The notes: a model not told the origin generated them from the letters alone. DNA of 64,000 bases from Heteronotia binoei (GCF_032191835.1 NC_083224.1:141422001-141486000); one strand, 5' to 3'; numbered from the stretch's first letter, positions 708 through 53,512 are shown. Made by a program: numbers and translations.

Positions 708-805
708 CTTAGATAAGGACAGACAAGAATAATCATAGCCATACCACGGAACACCCATCACAAGCTTCTTTGGATTAATACCCATGTGAATGTAGTCATC
801 ATATC
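708..805 (-). CDS. CTBS: CTBS exon 5
   Basis: (G)YDDYIHMGINPKKLVMGVPWYGYDYSCLSLSK; 98 nt, donor AAG|GTAAG. Confidence 0.96.
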
Positions 806-9800: not shown

Positions 9801-12800
9801 CAATACTACATTGAAAAACTTAACTGAAATTTGCAGGTAATTTATACTACAAAGAGGTGGGCAGCCATGTTGGTCTGAAGCAACAGAACAAAGTAGGAGT
9901 CCAGTAGCACCTTTAGGAGTAGGAGTCTAGCAACAAACTTTTATTCGGAATGTAAACTTTCATATGCATGCACAGAAACTTTGTTGGTCTTAAAGGTAAT
10001 ACTGGACTCCTACTTTGTTTTACAAGGATGGGTATTATTAATGTAAACCTTTTATTCATTAGTAACTTCAAGACTTATTGTCGTGTTAGAGTGCAACATA
10101 TTTTGCATGCAACCATACGTTTTCTCCAGCTTTGAGAGGAAGTGATTCTGAACAGAATGATTGCAAGAGAGGGAGCACAATATATCTCCCCTGCAATTGC
10201 TCCAGATCTTCTCTGGATCCTCATGGCTTCCCTTTCCAATGAATTCCAAATACCTTTTCCCTAGACTAAACCTATATTTGGAACATTTGCAGGAAGATAA
10301 ATCCCTCTGCAGATATTATACTGTATTCTGTCTAAATGGTGTAAGAATCCACCAGCTGTGTTTTGGAATTGCAGTTTCCACAATGTCTTTATCAGGGGTG
10401 TCAAACTCATTTGGTAGGATGGCCTGATCTGACACAAATGGGACTTTGTGGGGCCAGGCCATGTGTGTCATAAAATGTAACGTGACGTAGCAAAGATACA
10501 AACGTTATAAAGGACACAGACAAACACAACTAAAGATATTGTTTTTAACTTAAAATACAAACATGCCTAAAACTCTTGCAATATTTTGTTTAAAATGAAA
10601 AAGTTGGGGGAATAGTGGGATTTGGTAATGCAATTTTTAAAATAAAACTTCAAGAAAAGCACAAGAATCACAGCAGAAATGAAAAATATAAAATGCTCTG
10701 AGCTTGGGAAAACACTCCTGGGTCTACTCAGATTGGCAATGGCTCTTCAGTGTAATATCCCCCTTTGTCTGTGGGTTCCCAGGTTACAGTACTCACTAGG
10801 TCTGGTCTATTGAGCGGCTCAAAATATCAACCCTTTATTTGCAAGGACACAACTCCAGGAAGCATGAGCTTCAACTGTTTATAGGAACACTGACAGTGAA
10901 ACTGATATCCACTCAATTGAAACACAATGCAGCATAGACGAAGTTCCAAGGAAAACATGAAATGGATTTTCCATTAAGGTCTCTGGGCCCCATCTATTGG
11001 CAGAAAGAGCAGAGAACTTTGTCAGCCTTGGAGCTTCAAAGGGGGAGGACAGGAGGGGAAGGAGAAAGGAAAGAGCCATACAGGCCTGATTAAAGCCCTA
11101 AGCAGCTGGTTCTGGCCCATGAGCAAGACATTTGACGCCCCTGGTCTATATTGTGTGAATTTTCTATTTTCCAGAGTTCATGCGGGCGAGGCAGTTGGCC
11201 CCCTTCCTGGAACACAATGACCTGGCAACAGTGATCCATGCAACGGTCACCTCGAGGCTAGATTACTGTAATGCCCTCTACATGGGGCTGCCCCTGTGTC
11301 GAACTCGGAAACTGCAGCTAGTGCAGAATGCAGCAGCCAGACTGCTATTGGGCCTACCCCGGTGGGAACATGTGCAGGCTAGGCTGCGGGGGCTGCATTG
11401 GCTGCCAATTGTTTACTGAGTTCATTACAAGGTGCTGGTTATTACCTTTAAAGCCCTATATGGCCGAGGACCTGCCTACCTTAGGGACCACCTCTCTCCA
11501 TATGTTCCCCAAAGAGCACTACGATCCAGTTCACAAAACCTTCTGGAAGTACCTGGGCCAAGGGAGGCCAAACTAAAAATAACTAGAGAACAGGCCTTCT
11601 CTATAAAAGCACCCCAATGATGGAACCAGCTGCCGGAAGAGGTGCGGGCCCTGCGAGACCTTAGCCAATTCCGTAGGGCATGCAAAACCGCCCTCTTCCG
11701 GCTAGCCTTCCAAGATGGAGCTTGAAATAAACATCATGCCGTCATTAACATCAATAACTGAGATAGCAGTGATTAGACTATTTTAGATTGATTTTAGACT
11801 GTTTTAGATTATGTAAAAACTTAATGGTAAACTGTGAATTGTATTGGTAAACTGTAAATTGTATTGTACAACTGTTTTATTGTTTAACATGGCTCTGTCA
11901 TGCCTTGTAAGCCGCCCTGAGCCTGCCTCGGCGGGNNNNNNNNNNNNNNNNNNNNNNNNNNNNNNNNNNNNNNNNNNNNNNNNNNNNNNNNNNNNNNNNN
12001 NNNNNNNNNNNNNNNNNNNNNNNNNNNNNNNNNNNNNNNNNNNNNNNNNNNNNNNNNNNNNNNNNNNNNNNCACATTCAAAAATTGTTTTCTTTATTTAA
12101 ACTTGCCATCATTCAAAATTGCTCACTCCCAAAGCCGCTTTTCTAAAAAGAGAAAGTTACAAGATTTTGTTACATTCATTTGCATTTAACATGTCCTAAC
12201 ATACTTAGCACTGTCCTGACACGTTTAGCCCTGTGCAGAAGTTACATTTAATTCTGGCATCAGGAGTCCACCAACTGTGCATTTGAAGAATGCAATTCAC
12301 ATGATCACTGTCTGTATCAAATGAATTGGGCAGTATATGGATTTTCAATGCCAATGCAGTGTCTGTTCCGGAAAATGGAAAGTCTACAGCTCAATTCAGA
12401 CAACAGGGCAATCACACAAATTTCATTTCCCAAAATACAAATGAATGTAGCAATTCCTCTTTTTTTTTTCTTTTTAGAAAATCACCTTTGGGAGTCAATA
12501 ACTTTGAACAAAGATGATGGGGAGTTTAAAAAAATATAGACAATTTTTAAATCTTCTAAAAATTGTAAAGAGGGTAAAGCAACTGTATCTTTTTCTCCAT
12601 TCAAAATTGCACACCCACTCACATATACATGAGCCCTGAACAGTGTTAAGTTTATTTGCATAGACAGACTGATGTTCCTCAGATTCAATACAAAACAGAT
12701 AAGGCAACTTTTTAATTATTAGATGCCTGTTAAGCAAAAGGCTAGCAAACTCCAGTTATTTTTAAACTTTTGCATATTCTTTGCAACTGTCTTTCATAGC

Positions 12801-14218
12801 ACATATAATTTGACATATTCATTTTAGAGGAGTCTTTGGTGTGTGTTTTTAAAGAACCTGACTAACCATAATCACACACACAGCTTTTGTATTGAAATAG
12901 CACTAGCTCAGTACACATGAACAGCTAATCCCCTGCCAGAATTAATGATTAACAACAACAACAACCGTATCTCAAATTACACAAAGACTGAAAGGACTTC
13001 CAAAGGGCTCTTTGGCTCCTTCCTTCCCAACATTAATAGCAACAAAGGTTTTACCTGAGCTCTCTAGTCTGCACTTCAAGCTTTGCTTCATTTTTCAAGC
13101 AAGGCTTTAGATGCACAATAAGTAATAGTCTTTTTCTAAGCCTTTTATTGATACAACTGTTTTTTAAATTGTTCTAATTCTAACCTGCTTTGGCTGCTGG
13201 GGGAAGAGAACGGATGGAACATTTCAGATACATAAATGCAGAGCTTTTTTGAGCAGGAACGCAGTTCCGGCTGGCTTGGCACCAATGGGTGTGGCCTAAT
13301 ATGCAAATTAGTTCCCGCTGTGCTTTTTTTACCAAAAAAGCCCTGTGTGAAACAATGGTGCCATCAGGGGGTGTGGCCTGATAAGCAAATGAGTTCCTGT
13401 TGGGCTTTTTCTACAAAAAATGCCCTGCATAAATGCACACCTCTATTATTCTGAATACTAGAAACAAGAGTGTTATTTTAACATTTATGAATACCGTACA
13501 TAAAGAGTTATTTTAACATCTACGAACTTTGCTTTTGCAAGCACACAAAACCAGCAGAAACCCCGCTGTGCCTCAGTTTGCTTGGGAAAAAGCTGAAGGG
13601 CAGAGTGACTTGTGGCCTTGTAATGGAGAGCCACGTTTCTGCGCGCAGGCAGAAATTTAACTGCTGACGCTGTCACCCGCTACCGTACGAAAAGGCGGAG
13701 AAAGCCGAATTTCCACCTAGCACAGAAGCTCTAACAGCAGTACTAGAGCCCCGAAATGCTATGCCAGTCCGCACAAAATATCAGGAACCAAAAAAAGGAA
13801 GGGCTTAACTTCCCACGACGTCAGTAGCGCCCACACTGTGACTACGGATTGGCTAACCGGAAGGTTCTGCGCACCCTCGCCAATCCATGCATCTGACCAG
13901 GAGAGCTGTTTTTCGAAAGCTTCAGCTGCAATAAATTTGTTACTCTTAAAATTGCTGCTGGACGCTTTATTATTTTCCAGCAACAGACTAAAACGGCTAA
14001 CTCCTCTGAATCTCTTGCCAATCCCATCCCCCGTGGTCTCTCCACGCCCAAAAAACCCGGGGCCAGCTGCGCATGCGCACCTCGAAATCCCTGGTGTCCG
14101 AGATGGGGTTGCAGAGCGAGGGGAGTTCGCAGGGGCAGATGCTGCTGCATAAACGCAGGTGAAGGAGGAGCGCCATGGAGAGGCGCGCGCCGCCCTGGCT
14201 GCTTAGCAACCGCTTCAT
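708..14218 (-). CDS. CTBS: Di-N-acetylchitobiase (GH18), exons 1-5 of 7; 3' exons lie left of the window
   Basis: Spliced exons 14081-14218, 9341-9479, 6898-7106, 1339-1510, 708-805, all GT-AG with consistent phases. Translation includes CPC..LC..DFE|VFVF..YDWSQITTVATFGKYDPELMCYAHS..|DPAF..MDGINIDIEQ (GH18 DxxDxDxE-type motif)|VTFDVAWSP..YNYTGIADSCDFVFVMSYDEQSQ|..KKLVMGVPWYGYDY. Exon sizes 139/209/172/98 match the recalled human CTBS structure. Confidence 0.97.
1339..1510 (-). CDS. CTBS: CTBS exon 4
   Basis: VTFDVAWSPKCIDRRCYNYTGIADSCDFVFVMSYDEQSQVWTDCIARANSPYNQTLT(G); 172 nt. Confidence 0.97.
2527..2739. mobile_element. Non-autonomous hAT-like DNA transposon (MITE)
   Basis: TIR TAGGGTTGCCAG / CTGGCAACTCTA; degenerate 8-bp flanks CAGCTTTT / GTGCTTTT. 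Confidence 0.7.
3560..5849 (-). mobile_element. L1-like LINE: 5' UTR plus ORF1 N-terminus joined to an RT fragment (internally deleted)
   Basis: GC-rich start GGGGGACTTCTGG at 5849. ORF 4312-3971 (MASKKQSKK.., coiled-coil-like, as in L1 ORF1). ADDLVLY near 3800 and IKYLGV near 3610 are RT motifs. Confidence 0.72.
6221..6355. mobile_element. Foldback hAT-like MITE
   Basis: Near-perfect 135-bp palindrome CAGGGGTGGCCAA...TTGGCCACCCCTG. Confidence 0.8.
6898..7106 (-). CDS. CTBS: CTBS exon 3 (catalytic DGINIDIE)
   Basis: (G)DVPVKEIVDPAFRAAWIDQKVALAKQQYMDGINIDIEQIVNKSSAEYYALTALVKETTEAFHKEIPGSQ; 209 nt. Confidence 0.97.
8365..8492 (-). mobile_element. Sauria-type SINE, 5' fragment
   Basis: Matches the tRNA-like head of the copies at 26467, 29980 and 47929. 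Confidence 0.7.
8877..9156 (+). mobile_element. tRNA-derived SINE with L2-like tail (Squam3-like)
   Basis: GAGCCAGTTTGGTG..A/B boxes..GGGCGGGG..(TCT)n tail; closely similar to 24049-24342. Confidence 0.8.
9341..9479 (-). CDS. CTBS: CTBS exon 2
   Basis: VFVFQVGGKAWKFYDWSQITTVATFGKYDPELMCYAHSRGSRVVLK(G); 139 nt, AG/GT flanks. Confidence 0.97.
9857..10020. repeat. Short foldback interspersed repeat
   Basis: AACAAAGTAGGAGTCCAGTAGCACCTTTA ... TAAAGGTAATACTGGACTCCTACTTTGTT inverted arms; related pieces near 17570-17790 and 24880-24960. Confidence 0.6.
10393..11143. mobile_element. Non-autonomous hAT DNA transposon (about 750 bp)
   Basis: TIR CAGGGGTGTCAAA / TTTGACGCCCCTG; 8-bp TSD GTCTTTAT / GTCTATAT. 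Confidence 0.8.
11172..11935 (+). mobile_element. L2 LINE, 5'-truncated 3' end
   Basis: ..HATVTSRLDYCNALYMGLP..LQLVQNAAARLL..LHWLP.. (L2 ORF2 C-terminus), then 3' UTR GCCGCCCTGAGCCTGCCTCGGCGGG and an N-masked tail. Confidence 0.9.
13239..13427. mobile_element. MITE with internal tandem duplication
   Basis: TIR CAGAGCTTTTTT / AAAAAATGCCCTG; repeated GGGTGTGGCCT(A/G)AT(A)..GCAAAT(T/G)AGTTCC; related copy near 34887-35010. Confidence 0.65.
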
Positions 14219-15030: not shown

Positions 15031-15806
15031 AAAAATGTGCATTTAAAAATCCTTCGAATGTGATTTAAAAACACCAAACATACAAATATGCAACTTGTCA
15101 CTATAATTGACTTCCTTACCTAATTAGTATCGTTGAGGATCATACTTGATCCAGATCTGAAATACTTCTGCTGCTCAACAGTACTTCTGTCTTTCTAGTT
15201 TGCATTTTAGTTGTTAAGTTCCATTAAGTCCATGCATCATTCATCCCGGGCACTGAATCAGGACTTCCACATGTGAATATAAGATAAAACGGAGTCATCA
15301 GAACCCTAAATCTGAACATATGCATGATGCAGTCAAGCTGCAAAGGAGACATTGCAGCACCCCTTATATGTCAAAGCCATGACATAGACCTGAAGTTTCC
15401 CTGTATTACCTGGAGCCAAACATCAGAAAATGCTAAAACAACTGCAATACAAACCACTTCCCCTGAATTCCACCTCAACAGAGCAATCAAAAGAATACTA
15501 TGGCCATTGTAACAAAAGCTGCTAAGAGATCTAGGGGGGTGGGGGAATAGGACACACTTTGCCCACCCATCTCCCACTGGAAGTTATCTACTAAAAGTCC
15601 TCCACCAACACAGTTCCAAAGGCAGACTAGAAGCAAAAAGGAATTAGCAGGGCTAACCTTTAGGAGTTCTTTAGAGAGTGTTATCCTCATGAGTGTGTGG
15701 TGGATGTTATAAACTTTTAATAAAGAATCTCATTAAGGACTCTTCAGTCAGTGAATATGAAGGACAAGTCCTATTGTGGACTGAGAACTGGTTAAATTCT
15801 CAGTAT

Positions 15807-15905
15807 CATAAGAACATAAGAGAAGCCATGTTAGATCAGGCCAATGGCCCATCCAGTCCAACGCTCTGTGTCACAGTGGCAAAAAAAAATTATATATATA
15901 TATAT

Positions 15906-15937
<32 letters not shown>

Positions 15938-16108
15938 TGTGCCTAATAGCCACTGATGGACCTCTGCTCCATATTTTTTATCTAAACCCCTCTTGAAGGT
16001 GGCTATGCTTGTGGCCGCCACCACCTCCTGTGGCAGTGAATTCCACATGTTAATCACCCTTTGGGTGAAGAAGTACTTCCTTTTATCCGTTTTAACCTGT
16101 CTGCTCAA
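15807..16108 (-). mobile_element. CR1 LINE 3' end with (AC)n/(AT)n tract
   Basis: Reverse complement of the 3' end of the CR1 at 62810-63075; (TTCTTATG)n tail. Confidence 0.88.
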
Positions 16109-18364
16109 TGTACTTTTATAGTTAATAATATAGTTAACACCTGTATCAACGTACTTTTATAGTTAATGCATGTTTGCATATAGACATATTTGCTAATCAC
16201 ATGGTGGAAGTACCTTCATGTAAACTTGCTCTAAATTGTGCCATAGACTATTGTTAGGAGCATCAAATGTTCGTTGTTAAAGCTTCTAATGTAACACTGC
16301 AAAATGGAAATAAATTATGAAGATGTCGCAAATATGCGACATCCCCATCTAATTGTTTGCTTTGCTTTGCCTAGTTTGCTTTGCCTAATTTTTTTTGTTT
16401 CTGCAATACACTTGTGGGAATATGTAGGTGAAATAAACAGAGATTTTAAAAAGCAGTCTCAGGAAGTCTGGGTTCTGCAGAATGAAGTCAAGTTGCCTGA
16501 TTATGGTAAACTCCACAGAGCCTCTGCTAGCCACTTTCAATTTTGCTAGCTTGCTTTTCCATTTTAAAGGCTGAGAATACAAAATTCTACAGCTAAAACT
16601 GAGATGTGCTTAGATAAAAAAAATGTATATTCTTGGGATGTGTAAAGTGCTCCTCAGTTCCTAAAAATACTGACAAAAAACAGCTCCTTCTTCAAGCATT
16701 AGATTCCATTATTTGGAGCCAGGCCATGCCAGTGGAAGTTTCCAAACCACTGTTTTTCAAGTGTCTTGTCTCCAAGCCTGATCAGTTAAACAGGATATAT
16801 AGAAAATGTTTGCATATATGAGTGTATAAAATGTTTTGACTGTTTTGCTAACCTATAGCACCAGAAATTTCTGGGATAATCCAAGTCAAAGCAAAGGTCA
16901 CAGCATCTTTAGCTCTACAAATCCACTAGTTCAGTTTGTTTATTTCAGTTTTATATATCCATCTATAATGTTATATTCTTGCTCATATTCTCCACAGGTT
17001 TTTCCAGTCATCCAGAAAGGCACTTGAAACTGTATGAAATCATGGTGGTGCTGGTTAAGCTTCTATTTAAATAAACCACATATATTTAGATAAACCTCGA
17101 ACAGTAGCACCACAGTAAAATGTATACCTTGACCATGTGTTCGTCGTAACAGAGTTCCTCATTGCCATTTTCTTGAGCTTTTAATAACAAAGCACTCTTC
17201 ATGCATGGTAATCAGAAAGCAAAATAGACTTTCTGTAAAAAGAAAAATGTTGGCTCCCATCCATGTACTAACCAGGTACTGACTAGCACGGAGTTCTAGG
17301 TGCCTGTCTACTGAGGTGATGGGGATGCCCTAAGAGAACTTAAATATACTCAAGTGCTGCCTGAGTACTACTAACAGAAAGAGATAAGTTTGTAGTTTTG
17401 TTTTTCCTTTGTCTTTTAAGATTACCAAGGGTGGCTTTAATAAGCTAGTGCTGGAAGTGGAGTTCAACAGGGAATTTAGTCATATTGAAATTGGGTGGGC
17501 TTTTACCACAAATGGTGTCAGCTTAATAGTCTTCTGGATAGGGGGCTATTCTGATGGTCCAGAGGGTAGTCATGCTGGTCTGTAGTAAAACAATTAGATT
17601 TTAGTCCAGCAGCATCTTAGAGACCAACAAGAATTTCAGGGTGTAAGATTTTCAGAGTCAAAAGCTCCCTTTGTCAGACATGAGTAGAGATCTCCATTTT
17701 TACTTATATCTGATGAAGGGAATTTTGTCACTCGAATTTTGTCACTCATGCCCCAGCACTCCTGTTGATCTCTAAGGTGCGCCTGGACTTGAATCTAACT
17801 ATTTTTATATTGTAAACTTTTCTAAAACAAGAACAAAAGGAATAGGTTCTCAGTACCCCAAAATGAACCAAACAACAAAAGCAGCCAAAAACAGACGTAT
17901 AAAAATGCATCTTAACATTAATGTTAATTAGAGAAAAATTATTTTTAGATACATAAATTGCAACAATGTTTTTATTTACTATTTGCTTTTATCAGCTTAA
18001 TTTATTTTATTGTAAGTTACCTTGAGTGCTTTTTAAAAAGAAGGGTGAGGTATAAATCATACAAAAGAATGAATAAGAAAATCTCAGGGTGCCACCTGGA
18101 ACAATTAAAACTGACCTGGGTAATGGAAGCATATATGTAACTGGTGTGAAAGGCTGCTTTATGTTACAGCCTGATCTCAATGACTACCGTATTGAGGTCC
18201 AGTTTGTATGGCTTCATAGGAATATTTTGCACCAACTGTTCAGATATTTGACTGAAAAACCTCTTTGCAAAAAATATTTGGAAGATTCAGACCATGCACA
18301 AACAAACAAGGGCTGATCTAAAGGAAAGCCTTTTTTGTTGTTGTTAAAAGGAAGGTTTTAAACA

Positions 18365-19790
18365 ATGTGATTATCGTCCATGGTTTTAAATATTTACATT
18401 CATCATATCAATTTTAATTAATGAATTTTCTTTCTCTCCCCATCAAGGAAATGGAGTGGAAGGTTTGACACTGGGCAGTAGTTGGCTGGCTCAGCAGGAT
18501 CTAAAGATTTTTTTTTTCTAAGAGTGGTCCCACCGCTGGCTTCTTCAAAAACCCTGGGAATGTCCCTGAGCTCAGGGACAAGTTGATAACTTTTCCCAGG
18601 GGAACCCATATTCCATCACTGCTGGCTTTCACCAGCCTTAAAGGACATGGGTCAAGGAGGCAAATGGTGGACTTCACAGCTACCAAAGTCCTGTCAACCT
18701 CATCCTGGGAGAGTCTGCTGAATTGGTCCAATACAGGGCAGAAGACGACCAAGGGGCCTCCAGTGCATATAGTGTGTCAATAGTGGCTGGTAAATCTTGG
18801 CAGAGTGACAAAATTTTATCTGCGAAATAGCTCACAAAAGCCTTACAGCTAATTGCCAATTTGCTGTCCTTTTGGTTTTCCTCTGGAAGGGAGGTTAAAG
18901 ACCAAATTATCCTAAATAATTGAGTTGGGCATACACTTGTGGATGTAATGGAATACACCCAGAATTCCTTCTTAGTGACTTTCAGTGCCATCTCATAGGT
19001 CCTCATAAAAAGCCTATAAGATGTTCTTGCACCTTTATCATGAGTATGCCACCACACTTGCTTTGTCTTAACTCCTGTTTCATCCTCCATGGCACTGAGG
19101 TATACCAGTTTTGGCAGGAGAACAAAGACGGCATCAGGGAGTCACCTTGTTGATGGCTTCAGAGAGTCAGCTGTGCCAATCCTTTACCAGTTCATCTAAT
19201 GAGTCACTAGAAGGCATTGGACCCTGCAGAGCATTCTGAAAACCAATTAGATCCATAAGTCTCCACAGGCAAACATAAATCAGCTTTCCACTTAAACAGG
19301 GAGGGGTTAGGATACTCATACAAGCCTTCAGGACCAAGTGGTCATACCATGGCACAACCTCAGTATAAATCTGCAATTCTTCTTCTAGATCCATGTTTGT
19401 TATCCCCATTGCAAAAATCAAATCCAGCAAGTTGCCATGGACAGCACCAGGCCTATAGTCTGGGAGGAAGTAACACCATCTGCATGGACGCTGAAGTTCC
19501 TCAGAACGAAGCGCCTAGGGTGCTCCAACATCCAGTGCAAAACCACCTCCAGCAAGCTCTACAGGGTATCTGCTGGTGCGTTAGGTGGTTGGTACATCAG
19601 TCAGATAGCCAAATTCTCCTTTGTGTCCAATGGCAGGCCAACACAATAAATGTCAGTGATTTTTGGTGTGTGACTGGCCTGAAAGAGAAAGACTTTTGGA
19701 TAAATATCACCACCCAACCCCACCCTGTAGTCTGAGACTGATGAAGAAGTGAGAAACCTGGGGAGCCAGTTGATTCAGGGCGACTGTCTC
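18365..19790 (-). mobile_element. Degraded L2 LINE ORF2 (endonuclease to RT linker)
   Basis: YQPPNAPAD.., LDLIFAMG..PWYDHL, ..VKSTICLLDPCPLRLVK..VINLSL..G.FP..LK.PAVGPLLEK..LDP..ANY.PVSNLP across frameshifts. Confidence 0.85.
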
Positions 19791-20403
19791 ATCTTCTCAC
19801 AACCAAGTCTGTGTCACACACACACCAGGTCAATGCAAGGTCCATTGCTGAACTGGCTGTCAATGGAAGCATTATGCATTGCATAGACTCTTCCAGTTGT
19901 GCCAAATCAGTCAACTATAACAATAAAAATAAAAACAGTATACATTGTATGCTGTAGAATCAATTTATCTCCTTCATTCATGCATATTACCAGCCATATT
20001 GGAAGAGTATTTTTATTATTCATAGCCTATCATTCTGTATCTTATTATACTATATCCAACAGTAACAGATAAAATAAGATTTCTTCTACACATGCCACAA
20101 TCTCAATCAGAATCAGGTCCACAGATGCCTGTGAAGGATGGAATTCTCAGTTCACTTGTGATCCAAAGGCCTCACGCTGGCCAAAAGTGTATTGTGTTAA
20201 TCAATCCAAAGTTTCATTGAAGTGTTTTTAATACTGCATCTGTGTAATAGCTTGAAACATAAATGTTGATGATCCATCTAATAGCAGCCACATTTAATGT
20301 AGTAATCTTACCAGTGATACCCAAGCAGAACATAGTCTTCCAAGAAGACAACTGAAGCCAAACTTTGAAAAACAAAAAAATAGCCCACAAACTAGAAACA
20401 CTG

Positions 20404-20637
20404 ATTTTGCACTAGGGCTTGTTCCGGGTGGAGAGACCTTTTGCCCCCGGCGCTTATCTCAGAGCTGCGAGTTGGTGCACCTCTTTTCCATGGCAAGCAG
20501 AAACCACTTGTAAGAGGATCTTGCTTGCTGCAGAAAAGCGGCATGCCAACTCCCAGCTCCAGGGCAGCTTGTGTGAAAATGGAGAGAAGTGCTGGGAGCA
20601 AAAGGGCTCTCCTCCCAGAACAAGCCTAGTGCGAAAT
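20404..20637. mobile_element. MITE with about 40-bp imperfect TIRs
   Basis: ATTTTGCACTAGGGCTTGTTCCGGGTGGAGAGACCTTTTGC ... GCAAAAGGGCTCTCCTCCCAGAACAAGCCTAGTGCGAAAT. Confidence 0.75.
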
Positions 20638-22582
20638 GGATCTCAATTTAGATTCCAGTTCCAAAAAAGGAGACATCAAAGTCTGCAACTACTGTCAGAC
20701 CATTGTATTAATTTCTAATTTCTTTAATTTCTCATATAAGCGAAGTGATGCTCAAAATCTTACAATAGAGACTCACTATATATGGAACAAGAAATGTCAG
20801 ATGTGCAAACTAGATTCAGAAAAGGGAGAAGCACTAAAGATCATACTGCAAATTTATGCTAGTTACTAGAACATATGAGAGAATTTCAGAAGAAAATCAG
20901 CTTGTGTTTCATCAATTCCAGCAAAGTTTTTGACTATGTGAATCATGAAAAATTATAGCTGGTTTTAAAAGAAAGGGGCAAAACTACATATGCTGGGGAT
21001 CTAACAGTGAAATTAGCCATAAAACAGCCACTAGGTGGGGCAATTGGATCAGAACCGCAGCACTGGGTCCTCCCATATATTTCCTCAATCAAAATCACAT
21101 ATACTGGCAAATTGGTATTGATCACAATAGGGGGAAAGGCAGCAGTATATATTATATATACATTTCACCTAGCATTGACAGAACTTCTTCATAGCTTCAT
21201 TATCCTAATATATGAGGAAATCACATTGGAAAGATTTACCATGTGAGAAATTCACATACAATTGTGTGCCACCCTTCCCTTCACCAGTCAAAGTCAGTGA
21301 TGGTGACATGGGATTTCACCCATGACTCGCCTCTTCCATATGAATTCCTCATGATATACATTGCCTGACTAGCATGGATGCAGCCACAACAGGAAACAAT
21401 GTCTATGCTGTTCCAATCATAACGAGGCTTAACACAAGCAACATGAATATAAAGTGTACTAAAGAAATTAATTAATAGATTTGTTACAGTTGTAGCCACC
21501 AGTGTGAATAACCTTGCTGTAATATACGCTCCTGCTACTTAGACTGGGATTGAATCGTACAAGAGCAATGGTACAAGCTATAGATATATAGAGGAAAGGA
21601 AAAACATTTCCAAGGAAGCCCCTGGAATCTTATGTATTTTTCATATTTAAAATATTGTCATAGGCATAAAGAGAAAACACTTTTATGAGAAAGAGGATTA
21701 GAACTGTTTGTATCAGGTCTTCACAAATACTCTTAATGTTTTCCCTAGTCACATGATGCCCTTTCTCCATGAATAGTTCCCACATGACTGGGAAAACATT
21801 TAATTGACTGAGCCATATGAATGGAACTGATCATGTAGGTTTTAATATTTTGAAGATAAATACCTTTCCCCCTCTTAAAATTCTAATGACAGTGTTGAGA
21901 ACCTGGTGTCAATTAGGAACACCAAGCAGGTGTTGAAGAGTTAAATAATTTCTCCTCTTCCTATTGGAACCTTGATCTGAAGTGGATCTGCAGCATGTGC
22001 AAATTTATCTTTTACGGACAGATGAGATGGAGATCAATGATCTTTCTCATGTTACTTTGGACCACTTGCACGTTACTGTGTCTGTAGCTGTGTCAGTTTC
22101 TAAATGCCTCTGGTTTGACTAAATTATTTCTCCTACTAATGGATTTGTGAACTGTGGAATCTTGCCAATGGTGAAGGCCTTTAGGTGGTTATATACAAAG
22201 CCAGTCAACTGTAAACTGTGTTTACTTTGCACAAAATTGGCTATAGCTGTCGCTAGAGGGAAAACAGGCCTGGTTTCAAAGATCACAATGCAGGCAAGCA
22301 TTCAGAGTTCACAAAGAAGAAAGCAATCCACAGAGATCTGAAAGAGAATTTTCCAAACTCCGAGAGAGCAAGTATAATTGCTTTTGGTGGCATGGCATAC
22401 ATTTATAAAAGTATTAGCAGCTGGTAGATGTCCTGGCAGCGACCTCTTGAAAAACTTAATGCTGTCTGATACTTCTGCATTGCCCATTGTCTTCACAGCA
22501 AACACCATATCTTCATCATTTACTCTGGACAAAAGCCATGGGGGGTAGAGTTCCACTGCATCTGTATTGTTAATGCTGACAA

Positions 22583-23380
22583 CCAGGGTCGGCGTGTGGG
22601 AGTTGGCGAACTAGGTGACGGCCTAGGGTGCTGGCTGCCACAGGAGCGCCTCCCTCCCTCTGGCACAATCAACTGCGCCCCCTTTGTTCAGTAGGATCTT
22701 CCACTGCTGCCGCCCTCTTTCCTCCCTCTCTCCCTTCGCAGTGCTGGAAGCCAGCGCCGCACTCCGCTTAACCCGCGCCCCCCCCCATTGAGCCTAGGCT
22801 GGTCCTTACCAGCTTCAATGTGGCTGCACATGACTTCTAAGCCTTTGAAGGGCCCGCGATAGGAGAGTTCACTCCACCTCATTTCCGTTTCCAGCAAGGA
22901 GGGGGAGCAAACTCTCCTTCCACATGCCCTTCAAAGGCTTAGAAGCTGTGCGCAGCCACATTGAAGCTGGTAAGGACCAGCCTCGGTGGCAGCAATGGCG
23001 GGGGGGAGGAGTGCAGCCTGGCTTGCAATGCTGCAACGGAGGGAGAGTGGGGAGGGTAAGGATCAGCCTGGGGGGGTGGACGACAGAGTGCAGGGAAGCC
23101 TGGGGGTGGGCAAAGGGAAGGGGGAGAGGGTGCCTGCTTTCTTCCCAACTTTCTGCCCACTGTCTTCCCGCTCTTTGCAAGCCTCGGCAAGATCGGGGGC
23201 AGGGAGCAAGCATGCTCAGAGCCAGTGGCTCTGAGCACTCCCGCTGTCTTCCTTGGCAAGGTGGGGGGGGGGGGGGTGCCTGGCTCTCTCCTGCTTCAAA
23301 GCGGGAGAGGGCTGAGAATAGGGGGGCCCGCACATACCACGCACAGTCTGATGATGTCATCATGACACCGTCGGGCCGTT
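22583..23380. mobile_element. GC-rich insertion, probable non-autonomous DNA transposon
   Basis: Abrupt GC-rich block starting CCAGGGTCGGC; internal 57-bp inverted repeat (22797-22853 / 22926-22982). Confidence 0.5.
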
Positions 23381-24048
23381 AATAATAATACAAATTTATT
23401 ATTATTATTATTATTTGTAGAAATAAAGGTGGTGGATCTCATCCAGGGATTGTTATGCAGCTGCACCTACTATTCAATGGACAAGGTGGGAAGGAGGAGG
23501 TGGAACTATAAGAAAGGTTCAGGAGCTGTGCTCCTGTGAGCTCCCGCTGAATCTGAGGCCTGGTCCAGTCTACATTCAAATACTGCATTACAATCATATT
23601 TGCTCTGATCCTTCAGAACAGGACTGTCATTTAGAGGATTTACAAAAAGGATTTTTAGGATTACAATGGCACACATTGAAGGAGCAGCCTGCTACAAGAC
23701 AGACCCACAGAAGTTAACAATTGCACTGGCTGTCACTTATAGCTCACAACTTAAAACTTCTGCATGCCATCAATGATCTACTGCCTCTCCTGGATAAGGA
23801 TATTTCTCTTTCATAGGCCTGGGTGGTAGGCCTTGGCTTGCTCACAGACAGCCCTCTTCCAACTTAAAATAGCTTCTTACCAACAATAATGGACCACCAA
23901 GTAAAGGCACAAGCCCAGGAACTAGCCTAGATGCAATCTTTCTCCATGTATACACTCAGGCAATACTATTACAGAACTTATTAACATTAGGCACAACATT
24001 CTGGACTCATCCTCACACACATCATCCAATTAAATGTATACCATCATG

Positions 24049-24342
24049 TGCCAGTTTGGTGTAGAGTTTGGTGTAGTGGTTAAGTGTGCGGACTCTTATC
24101 TGGGAGAACCGGGTTTGATTCCCCACTCCTCCACTTGCACCTGCTGGAATGGCCTTGGGTCAGCCATAGCTCTGGCAGAAGTTGTCCTTGAAAGGGCAGC
24201 TGCTGGGAGAGCCCTCTCCAGCCCCACCCACCTCACAGGGTGTTTGTTGTGGGGGAGGAAGGTAAAGGAGATTGTGAGCCGCTCTGAGACTCTTCGGAGT
24301 GGAGGGCGGGATATAAATCCAATATCTTCTTCTTCTTCTTCT
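24049..24342 (+). mobile_element. Squam3-like tRNA/L2 SINE, full length
   Basis: GCCAGTTTGGTGTAG..GGTTTGATTCCCC (B box)..GGAGGGCGGGATATAAATCC..(TCT)n. Confidence 0.85.
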
Positions 24343-25381
24343 GCCAACAATACTCTTCTAGCATGAGTCAGTCCCTGTGTGAGCTAATTAGTTAACACAC
24401 ACATCTGACATTTTAAAAAACAAACAAACAAACAAACAAACCCTGCAACATTCAGAAACCAGTATGAGAACAGTTTTACCTCCCTAGACATCCTGTTGCA
24501 AGTCATAGAATCATTGTTTTACAAGAAAATACTTCAGAGTATACAATGTGAAAGTGCTGAATTAGAACTCCTCATGAAATTAAACATTATCTCTCAACCT
24601 AGCCTAAACAGAAAGCTGAATTTCCCTACTCACTATAATTTCTAACAGCTCAACAGGGAACCCCCCCCCCATTTTAGAGATTTCAGTTGGTTCTTCTTAA
24701 AATGTTGTATCATACTGTAGCCCTTTACTTACGCTAATCAGGTTTTCTTTTGCTTCAAATTCCTGCTTCCCTTGATTAGATGTGTTGATCATACTTCATT
24801 ATACTTTATTTGTTCCCCATGTTAGAAGAAAATTTGTACCTTCTGCAAAAATCTGCAAAATGATTTTCTTCTTATAGTCTATGAAGAAATGAGCTCTGAC
24901 TCTTGAAAGCTCATGCTGGGATAAATTTTGTTAATTTCTAAGGTGCCATTGGGCTTCTGTTTTAGTTTATGTTCTGTGCCTGTCTTCATGTAAAAGAGTT
25001 TATGACTCAGCTGAGAATTCAGGACAGGTCAGGAGAGGATGATGACCTCTTGAAAGTTCCTCAGTGTGCAAAATCACACAAATGTATCAGCCAGCTTACT
25101 CAGATGGAGGGTGGGCAAATATGAACTTCTGCTGTTTCATTACTCTCAGACAATACTAACATTGATAACTGTCAGAGCTTTGTTTAATCATAGTCTCTAT
25201 TAGAGGAAAGGAACCGGAAAACATAAGAACTGAGGAGGAAAGACTTTGGCTGGTTCATAGTGCAATTCAAAAATTGCTGATTATGTGCTATACAAGTTTT
25301 AGTTCTGCAAATCTGGTTGGAATTTAACTTGTGCTTCATTACCTGGTGCAAAAGTTAGTACTGTGATATCATCACACGTGA

Positions 25382-25710
25382 ATCTGCCTTATACTGAATC
25401 AGAACATATGAACATATGAAGCTGCCTTATACTGAATCAGACCCCCTGGTCCATTAAAGTCAGTATTGTCTTCTCAGACTGGCAGCGGCTCTCCAGGGTC
25501 TCAAGCTGAGGATTTTCACACCTATTTGCCTGGACCCTTTTTTGAACACTGGTCCTTCAGTCACACTGTCAACTTTAACTGACAGGAACTTTCCAGGGTC
25601 TCAGGAAAAGGTTGTTTACATCCCATTATCTGATCCATTTAACTGGAAATGCCAGGGTTTGTACCTGGAATCTTCAAAGCAAAAGCTCTGCAGCTGAGCC
25701 ACAGGCTTTC
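25382..25710 (-). mobile_element. Nested tRNA SINEs with CR1-like tail (Squam2-like)
   Basis: CTGCCTTATACTGAATCAGA occurs twice (near 25383 and 25423) around an (AACATATG)n tail; head TGTGGCTCAG at about 25705; related copy at 46180-46365. Confidence 0.6.
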
Positions 25711-26466
25711 ATATACAAACGGTTTCTTGCACTCTCAACACACACTTGCAAATTGCTCTAAAATTATAATATTGTATTAACATAGCCGTGGGAATAAAGG
25801 TTGTGTCTGTTGAACCGGAAGCCCACCAAAGGGACTGCTGTAGCAAAAAGGACCCAAAGAGCCAGACAAGTTTCAATGTAGAATGCTATAAACTCCCATC
25901 CTGATAGATCTTTAAAACATCAGATTTGATGGGGGGTGATGTACTAAAGCCTCACACGCTTGTTTATACAAAGTTATCATAGTTAGATAGACAACTGTTA
26001 TTAAAATACTAGTGGCCAATCTCTCTTGGCACTTGTGCCACAAAGCAGTTCTAAAGAATAAGATAACCAGTGTGACTCATATTTACAGCTCATATATAGT
26101 CCCCTGCACCTGTGTGTGATTTTTGCCTTTAGTCTAAACAGAGTTAGTGAGCAAAGTCATGGCTGGGGCACCACAAACTTCTGCTGTTTGTGACATTCAT
26201 GTGACCTGTTCTGAGGACTGACCACCCATGAATATCCAACAGGTGGCTCACAAACTGGGTAACAGTCTCTGGTAACCCTGCCAAATTTTATTCAAGGTAT
26301 AGAAAAAAGTTTTCCCAATTTAAGGAAAATATAAACTGTTTTCAAGTTTTAAAAGGATGGTCCAAATGGAAATGTTATATTGTTTTTTGGGTTTTGTATG
26401 GAATGCCCTAGCTGCGCTTCACTTCCAGCTCCCTGGTTTAGAGTTATACTCTCAGTGAATCTAGAA

Positions 26467-26669
26467 GTCCCATGGCGCAGAGTGGTAAACTGCAGTACTG
26501 CAATCCAAGCTCTGCTCATGATCTAAATTCAATCCTGGCGGAAGCTGGGTTCAAAAGATTGCCATCTCAAGGCTGACTCAGCTTTCCATCCTTCTGAGGC
26601 CGTTATGTCACCCCATGGGTCAGTAATGACTCGGTGCTTGTACAGGGGACTACCTTTCTTTACCTTTAC
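26467..26669 (+). mobile_element. Sauria-type SINE, internally deleted, with 16-bp TSD
   Basis: TSD CTCAGTGAATCTAGAA at 26451-26466 and 26670-26685; (ACCTTT)n tail. Confidence 0.85.
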
Positions 26670-27768
26670 CTCAGTGAATCTAGAACCACATACTACAGTT
26701 TAGACTACAGATCTCAATGGTTTTCTGCATGGCTTTCAATGCATCTATCACTATCTGGATTAATGCAAATCCATTGTGTGTTTTAAGCCTCCAGATATAT
26801 TATGAAGCTTTCCTAATTCATTTGTGTGCTTCTCAAATGGATGGGGATGGCATTTCTCCTTCATTTAAACCAGTAGTAACATCTGTTCTCCTTCATTGAA
26901 ACCAGTAGTAACATTCCCATCCAATAGGGTAAGGGAATTAATATAAAATGATCTTTTAAAAAAATCTGTTGAATCCATTAATAACACAAAAGATATTTTA
27001 ATTTTTTTTAAAAAAATGGTTGGTAGGGTGTGTTATTTTAATTATAGCAGGATTCAGAAAAAATATAGGGAGTCCAGCCAGCTTTTTCACTCCATCTCAT
27101 CCAATTCCCTTCCTTACTACTCCCTCTGCTGCAGGTCCCATGGTTTCCTGCACAGCCTTTTTGGTGGTCATAGTGGATCTGCTCACCAGCAGAAAAGTTG
27201 GTTGGATCCAATCCATATTTTATCATTCATTCTGAAGTCTCCAAGTACACAGTCTATAGAGAGGCGTGGGAAGGGATTTTTTTTGCTGAGGGAACACAAT
27301 GGAATGGAGTTCTGGAACCTCTTTATGGAAACAAAATTCTCCAAAAATGTTTAAAAGTTCATGAGGGGCACACATATGTTTCTCTTTCATTTTTCTCTTA
27401 AAAGTTCCAGCACCTCTTTTTCCAGAAAAAAAGGCTTGGGTGTCAGAAGGGGGAGCCAGCATCAATACTGATTTTCTTAATGCTAAGAGGAATGAATGAA
27501 AAACAAAAAAAAATGACACGATTTCTCCCAATGGAGATTAGATAGCTTTGTGTAGGTGGGTTTGGGTGCTTATTCCCACTGAGTTAGGCCCTATTGATCC
27601 TGTTATTTAATCTCTGTTGCAGATATTACTCATAAGAAAATACAATCCTTCATGCCACAATTCTTGATGAGGTTTGAAAGTATCCAATCACACATACACA
27701 ACAATTCACTTTTACACATATATAATGAAATAACAAGCCAGCATTTTTTTTCCTTTTGAATGCCAGTG

Positions 27769-27774
27769 TTTATT
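27769..27774 (-). terminator. Polyadenylation signal of vitellogenin
   Basis: First AATAAA on the minus strand, about 200 nt after the stop codon. Confidence 0.65.
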
Positions 27775-27970
27775 AGGAAATCATATGTTTCATTAATAGT
27801 TAACCTTGTTTCTACAAGGATATGGTTAGACTTTCTTTACAAGGTCAGACTTCTTCAGGAAGATTTAGTAAGACTTTTAAAATACTTAAATTAACATTTG
27901 TGCAGCTGCCTGGAATAAACATCCTGACTGCACACAACAGTATAGATTTCTAATTTGCTGGGCCAGAAAC

Positions 27971-28089
27971 TTATGAGGCACATCGTCGATTTTTACAAGA
28001 GCACAATGTGTGAACTTTGACTGAATGCACCAGATCTTCAGACTTCTGGTCTAGTCTCGCCCGTGTATCAAGTAAGTTTGTTGTGGAAC
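27971..28089 (-). CDS. VTG: Vitellogenin exon 35 (terminal, TAA)
   Basis: STTNLLDTRARLDQKSEDLVHSVKVHTLCSCKNRRCAS*. Confidence 0.94.
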
Positions 28090-31000
28090 CTGGAGACAAA
28101 GGAATGAAGAAGTTATTAGAATGGAAAACCTGAAAGTTGAATGAGTGCTTTTTATATCTTCATCTGAAATGTATTACACAGGGCAATTTCACTTAGAATC
28201 AGCAGGATGCATGTCCAATTCAGGATGGAACCCTAAACCAATTATGAAGGAGTACTGAGTAAGACTACTTAGGACTGGACTATCAGTGTGCACAGAACTG
28301 CTGTTAACCCATTCACGTGCATCCAGTGGCAATTTATGGTGGTGATGAACTACAAAATTTTCTGTTGCACTGTGGCGAAAACAGGAAAATGCGATTTGTA
28401 GTGCCAAACAAGTAGATATTATATTGACTTACCAGCTGGCAGACAATGCATGGCAACAGGAATGGAGACGGTAGCAGTTGGTAAGCAGCCCTCTTTACAC
28501 TGTAGCACAGACTCAACACTGAAACATTCTGATTGTTGACCCAGGTACTCGATCGTATGTTCAGGTTTCACATGTGAGTACCGCAGGTTGCAGTCTGCAA
28601 CAGGATAAACAGAATTCTTTCAATACCAGTTGAAAGACTAGAGGCTTTCATATAGTACAATACAAATGAACCTACAGTTTTACAATATAAAATTAACTTA
28701 GGTTCATCCCCTATTATTTATTGGCATTTCTAGAATGACTGTCTTAATGTTGGTTAACGTAGCATGGAAATAAGTCCAAAAAACAAGTTATCAGAGCCTG
28801 CTTACCTCCATCACAGGGTCCCTCAGTGTGCACCCAAGACTGAACAAAACCCAATGCATTTTTAGCTATACGTCCACTTGGAGTCTGGAATTCCTTTTCA
28901 CCATCAAATTGACCACATAGCCCCTGTAGTTGTTCTTGCATTGTGTTGGAGTCTACTTCAATCTTCATGAAAACAAAAACAAAACTATTTGGTGTTTTGC
29001 TTACAGTAACAATGGAAAATAGCTTATATGACTATGAGCTTGTTTTGCCACACAAGAGGTAGACAACTCATAAAAAGACTTTTGCCCTGTGAAGGCATCT
29101 GGCTTCATTATGGTGCACATAACTGTTAGGTGGATGTCAGAATGCCATCTCTTTGCTGTTCTCTGAACTGAAAGGTGGTATTCTGGCCCTGGCCACAAAT
29201 GCAACTCCTTGCCATTGCATTGCAAAGGCTTGCCTAGAAAGCACTGCAAGTTTGCAAGTCCATAGGTGAAATTTTCTCACTGCATCCCTGATACTTGCAA
29301 TACCCTGGAATCCAATGCAGATGTGTCTTACATTTGCAGAATGCCACTGAAGATGGCAATGTGCAGCCCTATCCCCCCCAAGTTCTTGCTGCCTCCCCAG
29401 AATTCACTTTATGCCCCATGTTCAAGATGACTAGAATAAATTATTGTAGGTAACCCAAACAAGTAGATATTATATTGGCTTACCAGCTTGGGGAGGGTGG
29501 AGGCCAGAAACCATTGGTGCTCTAATCCACCCTGAAACTCTTTGCTGGATTCCAGTGGCAAAAAGTTGGACAGCAGTCCACAGTCTGATCCCTCCTTCTA
29601 CCTGGGAAGCCTCTTGCTGCATCCCAGCAGGGCTGTGGTGAGAGCCTTCCCTGGTGGTGGTGAGGAAGACTGATCCCTTCCACCCACCATGTCCCAGCAA
29701 GAGACTTCCTGAGTGGGGGGAGGGGGGAGCGAGGAAGTGATCAGCATCCACAGCCAGCTGGGAGTCCATGCTCTGATCTTCCCAAAGGTCCAGACTGAAC
29801 AACTTGGATGTATTTGTATGCTGTGCACTCAGTGCCAACCCAACCACTGGAGAACTTAGTAAAAGGGAGAGCTTTTTATCTTCAAGATGTGGTTTGGGAG
29901 TTTATAAAGAAAGACTTATAAAAGCAGATACTACTCAATGTAGACTGAAGTTTTGCAGCAATATTATTCAGCTTAACAAGAAAGGAAAGGTCCCCTGTGC
30001 AAGCACCAGTCATTTCCGACTCTGGGGTGACGTTGCTTTCACATCGTTTTCACGGCAGACTTTTTATGGGGTGGTTTGCCATCGCCTTCCCCAGTCATCT
30101 ACACTTCCCTCCCAGCAAGCTGGGTACTCATTTTACCGACCTCGGAAGGATGGAAGGCTGAGTCAACCTTGGGCCGGCTACCTGAATCCAGCTTCCACCG
30201 GAATCAAACTCAGGTCGTGAGCAGAGAGTTCAGACTACAGTATTGCAGTACCGCTGCTTTACCACTCTGCACCACAGGACCCTCAGCTTAACAAAGAACA
30301 ATACCTAAATTCAAGTCAGGTTGCGTTGATTTTAATGAGCAAAGGATTTGAGTGAATTTTCCCATCATTTTTCATTGTCAGCTAGGGCCGGTCATTTGTT
30401 CTGATAATATGACAGGAAAGCACAGATTTGCTTTCTAATTTGCAATCATTTTGCAATCCTGAAAATATTCACTGTAGAGAGAAAAATACCGTGATATTGT
30501 GTCCATCATAGTAGCAAGTTAATTCATCATAAGCCTTCAGTACAAGTTGACCATTTTTCTCTGTGATGGCAATGGTTAAACCTGTAAAATAAAAGTCCAA
30601 AATGATAATTTATCTGAAAAAAATGAGGGAACAGACAAATCAAGCTAATAAAAATGTTCCTTGGATTAAATAATTGTCCCTGTTATATTGACTATTCCTC
30701 TGTATCCTGTGTATAAATCCATTCTGAGGTCTCTTTTTAGTAAGTGAAGAGATATCAATAACCTGTTCAGATTTGTGAAAACATTTTAGCTATTCTTTTC
30801 TAGCCTTCAGTTGGAAGATGACTAAATAGTGTGATTTTCTTTTTCAATGCAAGCTCTCTTCTACATTTATGTAGAGTTTTGGTTTCTTGTCTCCCAACAA
30901 TCCTGCTTAAACCTTGGCACTTACTGCTTAGCCTGCAGCTGCTTCCACACAGGAATCAATGTGGACAGCAGGATGCCCCCTCTGCTTCTGGGAGTGTTTG

Positions 31001-53436: not shown

Positions 53437-53512
<76 letters not shown>

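Follow-up and report, generated by a model that had tools for sequence, protein, structure and literature searches.

A probable VTG3 pseudogene upstream of CTBS in an egg-laying gecko

The loss of vitellogenin (VTG) genes is a textbook genomic signature of the move of mammals away from yolk nutrition. Remnants of VIT1-VIT3 have been described in opossum, human and dog (Brawand et al. 2008, PMC2267819). Unitary VTG pseudogenes are thus already known in mammals, and the VTG3 relic of a gecko described here is a further case. In birds, VTG3 (~1720-1735 aa, annotated as 'vitellogenin-2-like') has CTBS as its neighbour and forms a same-strand tandem with a second VTG, an arrangement also seen in the 64,000-nt window analysed here, the whole stretch NC_083224.1:141422001-141486000 of Heteronotia binoei. 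However, bird VTG3 is functional and retains its C-terminal exons, which does not hold for the gecko relic. The sequences closest to the relic are those of the live CTBS-adjacent 'vitellogenin-2(-like)' genes of squamates (1459-1496 aa in Anolis, Pogona, Tiliqua, Hemicordylus, Rhineura and Zootoca), which share with it the slot, the strand, the length of exon 13 and a short intron 33. The squamate genes are intact, in contrast to the gecko copy, which is disrupted and has lost most of its sequence. We consider it highly probable (about 0.9) that the relic is a unitary pseudogene of VTG3 retained at the ancestral place and in the ancestral orientation in a gekkonid gecko; no description of a gecko VTG3 pseudogene was found in the literature searched.

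Exon relics between a live vitellogenin and CTBS

The minus strand of the window carries, in this order, a live VTG, the relic and CTBS (Table 1). CTBS is anchored by exon 1 at ~14218-14090 and by an exon at 7107-6895, the latter being 100% identical to the Heteronotia binoei protein. The same order is found in kiwi, in which VTG (1752 aa), VTG (1734 aa) and GH18/CTBS occupy a single strand, and in Anolis sagrei, in which VTG (1474 aa) is followed by CTBS. With the exon 34 relic ending at 16866 and CTBS starting at ~14218, the relic shares its strand with CTBS and lies just upstream of it, that is, in the VTG3 slot. An earlier note on this DNA had proposed a fossil VTG gene in this CTBS-adjacent slot; its core is real, with minus-strand relics in order, and the assignment to the slot is borne out by synteny in kiwi and Anolis, by phylogeny and by the AU tests given below.

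Table 1. Features of the locus, in positions of the window
Feature	Position	Strand	Evidence
CTBS (di-N-acetylchitobiase), downstream neighbour	705..14218	-	tblastn with kiwi CTBS exons and gecko CTBS proteins
Exon 34 relic, VWD region	16866..17029	-	hmmsearch 22-25.6 bits (16952-17038), 4-6.5 bits (16866-16913)
Intron 33, 98 nt, GT..AG	17030..17127	-	sequence reading
Exon 33 relic, VWD region	17128..17232	-	hmmsearch 13.3-15.8 bits and sequence reading
Expected place of exons 15-32	17233..21330	-	none demonstrable
Exon 14 relic, weak	21331..21458	-	TLFP motif and spacing match
Intron 13, collapsed to 29 nt	21459..21487	-	GT donor and TTTCTTTAG acceptor still present; sequence reading
Exon 13 relic, open frame	21488..21585	-	hmmsearch 22.6-23.8 bits
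Intron 12, retained, ~550 nt	21586..22136	-	GT donor, pyrimidine tract, acceptor AG->AT; sequence reading against Anolis junctions
Exon 12 relic, end of Vitellogenin_N domain	22137..22358	-	hmmsearch 62-63.5 bits; Pfam PF01347 24.9 bits
Intron 11, 3'-end remnant	22359..22379	-	pyrimidine tract kept, acceptor AG gone
VTG3 exon 11 relic	22380..22560	-	hmmsearch 19.6-23 bits on open piece 22395-22529; part of 90.6-bit match
Expected place of exons 1-10 and promoter	22561..27900	-	no relic demonstrable
Live, highly divergent vitellogenin, upstream neighbour	27980..58371	-	26 collinear profile matches, exon 1 to last exon

The core of the relic is a match to the amniote VTG profile at 22529-22137 on the minus strand, which covers exons 11 and 12 (exon numbers follow the earlier note) joined over 135 columns with 90.6 bits and E = 1e-29. 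The profile search yielded five more minus-strand pieces, in the order expected from the VTG protein, and no score comparable to those of the core pieces was obtained from the plus strand, the reversed profile or permuted controls. Homology to the Vitellogenin_N domain was found both for a 60-aa open piece of the exon 12 relic (PF01347, 24.9 bits at a cut-off of 24, profile positions 550-590) and in a Pfam scan of the whole genome, which finds the relic at PF01347 positions 473-590 (E = 4.9e-5), placing it in the VTG family. Furthermore, lamprey lipovitellin (1LSH) matches the exon 11/12 region with E = 0.003, and in a phmmer search of the exon 12 relic against 1.84 billion proteins the best matches were vertebrate VTGs.

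The exon 11 relic has an approximate 5' edge and lacks ~6 codons near its 3' end. The exon 12 relic (222 nt versus 218 nt in Anolis) is followed by a GT donor, and in it, as previously noticed, a conserved Arg codon has given way to an in-frame TGA (22302-22304). Exon 13 was correctly reported to be exactly 98 nt long, as is the Anolis exon, and to have its acceptor changed from AG to AT; in a place-specific control it scored 42.9 against a null of 9.3. For exon 14, the intact acceptor, the two in-frame stops and the GC donor (GCGAGT) are all present, but its description as a strong relic was too generous, given a similarity of 14.8 bits versus a null of 9.3 +/- 1.8 (p ~0.008 at this pre-specified place).

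Two relics absent from the earlier note and new in this analysis, those of exons 33 and 34, fall on the VWD columns of the VTG profiles (13-26 bits), that is, in the C-terminal region of the protein. In exon 33, both the acceptor and the GT donor are preserved, the frame is interrupted by a single TGA, and the length falls 12 nt short of that in Anolis. In exon 34, a 21-nt deletion takes out the CGxCG motif and an insertion of ~37 nt introduces stops and a frameshift.

Beyond the six core pieces, collinear-chain dynamic programming, in which frameshifts and jumps were allowed, recovered nothing above controls. Chains had z-scores of -0.9 to 0.05 for exons 1-10 and 0.1-0.7 for exons 14-32 relative to permuted, reversed and plus-strand controls; place-specific tests in 22561-27900 gave p = 0.12-0.75, and tblastn across 17233-21330 remained at noise level. 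A tblastn check of the interval, as proposed in the earlier note, likewise returned minus-strand matches no better than plus-strand ones. Roughly fifteen exon relics had been listed there, of which only about six exon relics can be demonstrated. The supposedly strong exon 19 (18116-18312) is marginal (uncorrected p-values of 0.02 and 0.15 from the two profiles), whereas exons 3, 4, 5, 7/8, 17/18 and 26 are at chance level in place-specific tests (p = 0.11-0.79), with their best local matches on the wrong profile columns. For the claimed exon 26 (15340-15520), the counterpart in Eublepharis lies beyond the last VTG3 exon; being downstream of exon 34, it is out of order. Nine other open pieces, including those within the claimed exons 19, 3, 5, 4 and 26, had no VTG match in Pfam, and a sub-threshold FAST_1 match on one open piece was taken as chance. 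A second intron-less junction inside 'exon 19' is not claimed, the underlying match being marginal. A penultimate-exon candidate at 16095-16033 (16.7 bits) was treated as spurious because it overlaps a repeat with copies elsewhere (88% identical on C9). The interval also contains a LINE-like fragment at ~18453-18999, with a copy on C12 that is 80% identical, and a young SINE at 24064-24342, with copies 96-100% identical across the genome.

Overall, the relic lacks the unbroken reading frame and the full set of usable splice sites of a functional protein-coding gene: stops interrupt exons 12, 14, 33 and 34, the acceptor of exon 13 is AT, and introns 11 and 13 have collapsed. Surviving DNA amounts to ~5.7 kb versus 24-45 kb in live orthologs, and demonstrable coding sequence to ~0.8 kb of about 4.4-5.2 kb; with neither the 5' half nor the promoter detected, the orthologs serve as the guide to how far the gene originally extended. 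Judged by its sequence, the relic is without function as a yolk-protein gene. The scan of the whole genome with PF01347 matched, in addition to the relic, the live neighbour, a VTG at C2:135.19-135.24 Mb and two further loci on C1 and C20; of these, the live neighbour and the 135-Mb VTG were compared with the relic, and neither is an intact copy of VTG3.

The locus in other geckos

The survey of other geckos that the earlier note had suggested revealed an orthologous broken relic in Eublepharis macularius and no detectable one in Paroedura picta, in which 9.6 kb separate the live VTG from CTBS. The 10-kb flank upstream of Eublepharis CTBS contains VTG3 exons with an in-frame stop and a SINE insertion and no called gene, and aligns with the DNA of the window from within exon 34 through to CTBS. 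Within this flank, the set of retained exons differs from that of Heteronotia (exons 11-14 would lie farther upstream). Moreover, no gekkotan protein is found among the squamate VTG3 protein matches, although gecko proteomes are in the database. At least three geckos, representing two families, thus have a VTG3 that is either disrupted or missing, Paroedura belonging to the same family as Heteronotia; the decay of the gene in Eublepharis together with its disappearance from Paroedura suggests that the loss is widespread in Gekkota.

The persistence of exons 11-14, four in a row within 1.2 kb, in a gene that is otherwise mostly lost might suggest that the surviving exons have been kept for another role, as part of a non-coding RNA or as a regulatory element of the live VTG or of CTBS. 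We consider this very improbable, given that Paroedura, of the same family, is entirely devoid of these exons, that a different exon set is retained in the Eublepharis flank, and that the one alignable piece of the relic, at 75.5% identity to Eublepharis, falls within the span measured for non-coding DNA on its flanks (69-82%).

Divergence of the Eublepharis relic exceeds that among live orthologs only slightly. In the Heteronotia line, inactivation would be old, on the order of 100 million years, according to a crude estimate from the identity ratio of the best-preserved exons. One tentative scenario, which we regard as possible rather than likely, is that VTG3 was lost more than once in Gekkota, early in gekkonids (decayed in Heteronotia, erased in Paroedura) and much later in eublepharids, with the fast-evolving neighbouring VTG taking over yolk supply. 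These geckos are egg layers with clutches fixed at one or two eggs. If true, the scenario would mean that loss of a yolk gene recurred and was tolerated in the absence of any shift towards live birth.

Orthology with VTG3 and mode of origin

Over 223 columns, identity of the relic with live squamate VTG3 is 43-51%, as against 24% with the live neighbour and 20% with the 135-Mb VTG; its identity to bird VTG3 and VTG2 is 43-47%. In maximum-likelihood trees built from a reference set without VTG1 and squamate VTG2, the reconstructed relic, for which a tree had been proposed earlier, falls inside the squamate clade of CTBS-adjacent VTGs (UFboot 95 and 100), and this clade is sister to bird VTG3 with support of 79-91, placing the relic in the VTG3 group as defined by these references. 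Within the squamate clade it is sister to Hemicordylus (support 41-57), in conflict with the species tree; this placement probably reflects the long branch of the relic (0.83). AU tests reject the grouping of the relic with the neighbour (p = 0.03), with the neighbour and the 135-Mb gene (p = 0.02) and with VTG2 (p = 1e-6). The exon-intron structure also agrees with the VTG3 group in the length of exon 13, the homology of the intron 11 tail and the short intron 33, which measures 98 nt in the relic, 82 nt in Anolis and 74 nt in kiwi.

The position of the relic next to the live VTG, in identical orientation, would fit a lineage-specific tandem duplicate of that neighbour which died soon after copying; the earlier note had called the relic a tandem duplicate. 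This origin is very improbable: the relic is far from near-identical to the neighbour, being about twice as similar to squamate and bird genes, the AU test rejects the pairing, intron 33 of the neighbour is ~1.5 kb long, and Eublepharis has an orthologous relic. When translated segments of the live gene were compared directly with the interval of the relic, only shared transposons matched; with 22% identity in exon 12, the two genes have diverged too far for this comparison. As far as sequence comparison goes, the relic is an ortholog of the ancient amniote VTG3 and not a recent tandem copy of the live neighbour.

The other part of the earlier statement, namely, that the relic is not a retrocopy, stands. 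Chance insertion of a processed or semi-processed retrocopy between VTG and CTBS could account for the in-frame joining of exons 11 and 12 with no intron between them and for an intron 13 of just 29 nt (1.7 kb in Anolis, 415 nt in kiwi). However, the 21 nt directly 5' of the exon 12 relic align with the 24 nt at the 3' end of Anolis intron 11 (1.2 kb in Anolis, 410 nt in kiwi), indicating that the exons were joined by deletion of the remainder of the intron and not by splicing; for the same reason, precise loss of intron 11 mediated by a reverse transcript was rejected. Furthermore, introns 12 and 33 persist together with their splice signals, in conserved phases, place and strand are exactly syntenic, and neither a poly(A) tract nor a target-site duplication was seen. 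A retrocopy is therefore highly improbable, and the intron relics point to a VTG gene that decayed in situ. Finally, although most of the weaker relics of the earlier note are at noise level, chance similarity in repeat-rich intergenic DNA is a negligible explanation for a core with E = 1e-29 and six collinear pieces on one strand that has no equal on the plus strand, with the reversed profile or in permuted controls.

Vitellogenin loss in geckos and mammals

Under the preferred reading, a VTG3 pseudogene in its ancestral place, deletions after inactivation would have shrunk the locus, with introns 11 and 13 collapsing to 21 and 29 nt, and exons 1-10 and 15-32 would have been removed or have decayed past recognition. 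Transposons would also have inserted into the dead locus, and the supply of yolk would have fallen to two remaining genes, the divergent neighbour and a third VTG at a distance of 6.2 Mb.

Of the three yolk genes ancestral to amniotes, one thus appears to have decayed in a lizard lineage of ordinary egg layers, in agreement with the earlier proposal of a yolk gene that died among egg layers, the host being an egg-laying gecko. The decay of VTG3 in egg-laying geckos implies that VTG copy number can drop without viviparity, so that caution is needed when reproductive mode is read from VTG counts. The lesions of the VTG3 locus can be dated and used for gecko phylogeny, and the locus is a natural setting for testing whether the neighbouring VTG, itself unusually divergent, changed once its partner was lost.

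The gecko locus resembles the mammalian VIT remnants in that both are unitary VTG pseudogenes at syntenic places, in which scattered exons with stops and indels persist between conserved flanks (PMC2267819). Unlike in mammals, in which all three genes were lost with lactation and placentation, the loss in the gecko concerns one paralog in an oviparous squamate that has kept its two other VTG genes.

Vitellogenin exons between CTBS and the live vitellogenin gene

The window corresponds to C2:141422001-141486000, and the interval under study comprises the ~14 kb that separate CTBS, a GH18 (di-N-acetylchitobiase) gene, from an intact vitellogenin (VTG) gene, hereafter the live neighbour (see the table). 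The Heteronotia binoei CTBS protein is a 100% match to the window over the exon at 7107-6895. RAG1 of the genome shares 93% identity with a Gekko kuhli cluster and no more than 84% with squamates outside Gekkota. For this interval, an earlier note based on the sequence alone had claimed a fossil VTG gene at 15340-27226. We ran an amniote profile of 18 VTG2 and VTG3 proteins on the three minus-strand frames of 12500-28000 and obtained several minus-strand pieces arranged in the order of the profile positions (columns), so that the collinear hits extend beyond a single exon. On the plus strand, the amniote profile produced a single hit, with -7.9 bits. Identical pieces were recovered by a search with stop-free segments and by a squamate-only profile. 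An open 60-aa piece (22122-22301) matches Pfam Vitellogenin_N at profile positions 550-590 (24.9 bits, cut-off 24) as well as the lamprey lipovitellin 1LSH. Among 1.84 billion representative proteins, this piece yielded 14 hits, and all nine of those checked by name are vertebrate vitellogenins or VTG-domain proteins, including 'vitellogenin-2-like' proteins of Anolis and a parrot and proteins from Pelodiscus, Zootoca and Phrynocephalus. Given the concordance of the profile searches, exons 11, 12 and 13 of the earlier note are real, as are two exons of the VWD region near 17 kb which were absent from its list.

Features of the CTBS-VTG region (positions in the window; columns are positions in the amniote VTG profile)
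Feature	Position	Strand	Evidence or remark
CTBS	exon 1 at ~14218, other exons down to 705	minus	exon mapping
Profile match	16913-16854	minus	columns 1602-1621
Profile match	17035-16949	minus	columns 1567-1602
Profile match	17202-17107	minus	columns 1544-1575
LINE-like fragment	~18453-18999		inside relic interval
Profile match	21596-21486	minus	columns 601-638
Profile match	22529-22143	minus	columns 470-604, 90.6 bits, E 1e-29
Young SINE, ~280 bp	24064-24342		96-100% identical to at least 39 genome-wide copies
Live VTG, complete	58371 (exon 1) to 27980 (last exon)	minus	26 collinear profile matches

The details that the earlier note gave for exons 12-14 held up. Exon 12 (22358-22137) carries a TGA (22304-22302) at a position that is Arg in every reference, and exon 13 is exactly 98 nt long, the same as its Anolis sagrei counterpart (L012:27803-27900), with the acceptor changed to AT and the preceding pyrimidine tract preserved. 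Exon 14 keeps its acceptor intact and has two stops and a GCGAGT donor; at the protein level it shows weak similarity, yet above chance at the pre-specified place (14.8 bits versus 9.3 ± 1.8, p ~0.008). Exon 33, 12 nt shorter than its Anolis equivalent, is interrupted by an in-frame TGA, and exon 34 has lost its CGxCG motif to a 21-nt deletion and gained a ~37-nt insertion that introduces stops and a frameshift.

Several introns have left traces. Exons 11 and 12 adjoin in frame, but a precise loss of intron 11 was discarded because the 21 nt ahead of exon 12 can be aligned to the final 24 nt of intron 11 in Anolis; a deletion therefore took most of that intron together with the end of exon 11. 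Intron 12 is kept (~550 nt), intron 13 has shrunk to 29 nt and retains its splice signals at both ends, and intron 33 (98 nt, GT..AG) corresponds to introns of 82 nt in Anolis, 74 nt in kiwi and ~1.5 kb in the live neighbour. As the earlier note had argued, these introns and splice relics exclude a retrocopy; they also tie the relic to the VTG3 orthologs rather than to the live neighbour.

The remaining exons that had been proposed (3, 4, 5, 7/8, 17/18, 19 and 26) were put through four kinds of test. When each stretch was aligned locally to the whole profile with frameshifts allowed, the top match landed on the wrong columns, and tblastn with ~140 VTG proteins over these stretches gave minus-strand hits no better in quality than those on the plus strand. 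Collinear-chain scores for exons 1-10 and 14-32 had z values of -0.9 to 0.7 relative to reversed, plus-strand and block-permuted controls, and place-specific tests on the expected columns gave p = 0.11-0.79, exon 19 excepted. For the latter, one profile gave p = 0.02 and the other 0.15 (14 tests, no correction), which leaves exon 19 marginal; the others were not borne out. In addition, 'exon 26' (15340-15520) is out of order because it lies downstream of exon 34, and its Eublepharis counterpart sits past the last VTG3 exon. All these stretches may nevertheless hold decayed exon DNA. The block at 15281-15506, which contains 'exon 26' and is located between the relic and CTBS, is ~74% identical to sequences at the CTBS loci of Eublepharis macularius (L021:7685-7889) and Paroedura picta (L022:8409-8683) and lacks a conserved reading frame; it may represent a conserved non-coding element, or simply DNA that decays slowly. 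Immediately upstream of the exon 11 relic, the segment 22600-23400 is G+C-rich (49% in a 2-kb bin), with long open frames rich in proline (maximum 169 aa) on both strands.

Relationship of the relic to VTG3

In an alignment of 223-224 residues, the relic shares 43-51% identity with the live CTBS-adjacent VTGs of squamates and 43-47% with VTG3 and VTG2 of birds; identity to a third Heteronotia VTG (C2:135.19-135.24 Mb) is 20%, and that to the live neighbour, 24%, is far from near-identity. In maximum-likelihood trees, the relic falls within the clade of squamate VTGs of 1459-1496 aa (UFboot 95, or 100 when the Eublepharis relic is included), which is sister to bird proteins of ~1730 aa (support 91, or 79 with the Eublepharis relic). 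The AU test rejected grouping of the relic with the live neighbour (p 0.03), with the neighbour plus the 135-Mb gene (p 0.02) and within the VTG2 clade (p 1e-6). The assignment of the CTBS-adjacent slot to VTG3 in the earlier note agrees with this tree and with the same layout elsewhere: in kiwi, a 1752-aa gene, a 1734-aa VTG and the GH18 gene follow each other on one strand, and in Anolis sagrei, the GH18 gene lies 2 kb beyond a 1474-aa VTG. Taken together, identity, trees, AU tests and synteny identify the relic as the VTG3 ortholog, decayed in place. A deposited 1570-aa protein of Phrynosoma platyrhinos (P0033) is an annotation chimera of the CTBS-adjacent VTG and the CTBS GH18 domain (residues 1304-1544), incidentally confirming this adjacency in that lizard.

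The live neighbour (27980-58371, minus) is itself unusually divergent, with 24% identity to the relic over ~200 positions, compared to 43-47% for bird VTG2/VTG3. In trees built without VTG1 and squamate VTG2 references, it groups on a long branch with the 135-Mb gene (support 67-71), outside the clade of amniote VTG2 and VTG3, and may be a fast-evolving VTG2 or something else. In Paroedura, a 1901-aa gene ends at the equivalent position. The neighbouring 1954-aa VTG of Anolis sagrei (L012:1-1303) is head-to-head with the CTBS-adjacent VTG, its exon 1 being on the opposite strand, 8.7 kb off, whereas the two genes are in tandem in kiwi and gecko, which suggests that an inversion took place in the Anolis lineage.

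Decay of the locus across geckos

We compared two more gecko CTBS loci, those of Eublepharis macularius and Paroedura picta, each with a 10-kb upstream flank; there was a broken relic in the former and none detectable in the latter. The Eublepharis flank has no called genes, and its CTBS strand carries VTG3 exons at columns 1449-1534, 1596-1621, 1643-1677 and 1683-1711, with an in-frame stop, a frameshift in the last exon, and a SINE occupying the place of exon 33 and the first part of exon 34. At the DNA level, the window and this flank are alignable from inside exon 34 to CTBS (69-82% identity). In Paroedura, 9.6 kb separate the end of the 1901-aa VTG from CTBS, and relic exons are undetectable in this interval; the DNA on both sides of the Heteronotia relic is alignable with it. 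There are no gekkotan proteins among the squamate VTG3 hits. In squamates outside Gekkota, the live VTG3 proteins (1459-1496 aa) stop near column 1621 and lack the C-terminal ~90 residues that the bird and turtle proteins possess. The last two exons are still present in the Eublepharis relic (L021:6034-6138 and 6907-6993), and therefore the C-terminal shortening seems to have arisen after the gecko split.

Identity to live squamate VTG3 amounts to 47% for the Heteronotia relic, against 66% among the live orthologs, and to 53% for the Eublepharis relic, against 58%, figures that come from different columns and from the best-preserved exons only, with an overlap of just ~50 nt between the two relics. 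The difference suggests that the gene died far earlier in the Heteronotia line, on a crude estimate around 100 million years ago; the Eublepharis copy may have been inactivated more recently, in a separate event.

H. binoei is oviparous. Judging from its sequence, the relic is a non-functional remnant, not a working yolk-protein gene, and deletions and transposon insertions would have shaped it following inactivation. The SINE in the interval was active very recently, given its near-identity to other genomic copies. A 54-nt piece of this SINE (89% identical) lies inside the Eublepharis relic, at the exon 33/exon 34-start site (L021 ~4100-4260).

Our literature search did not find descriptions of gecko VTG pseudogenes. 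VTG pseudogenes at syntenic places are already known in mammals (PMC2267819), and the gecko VTG3 relic is an addition to pseudogenes of this type.
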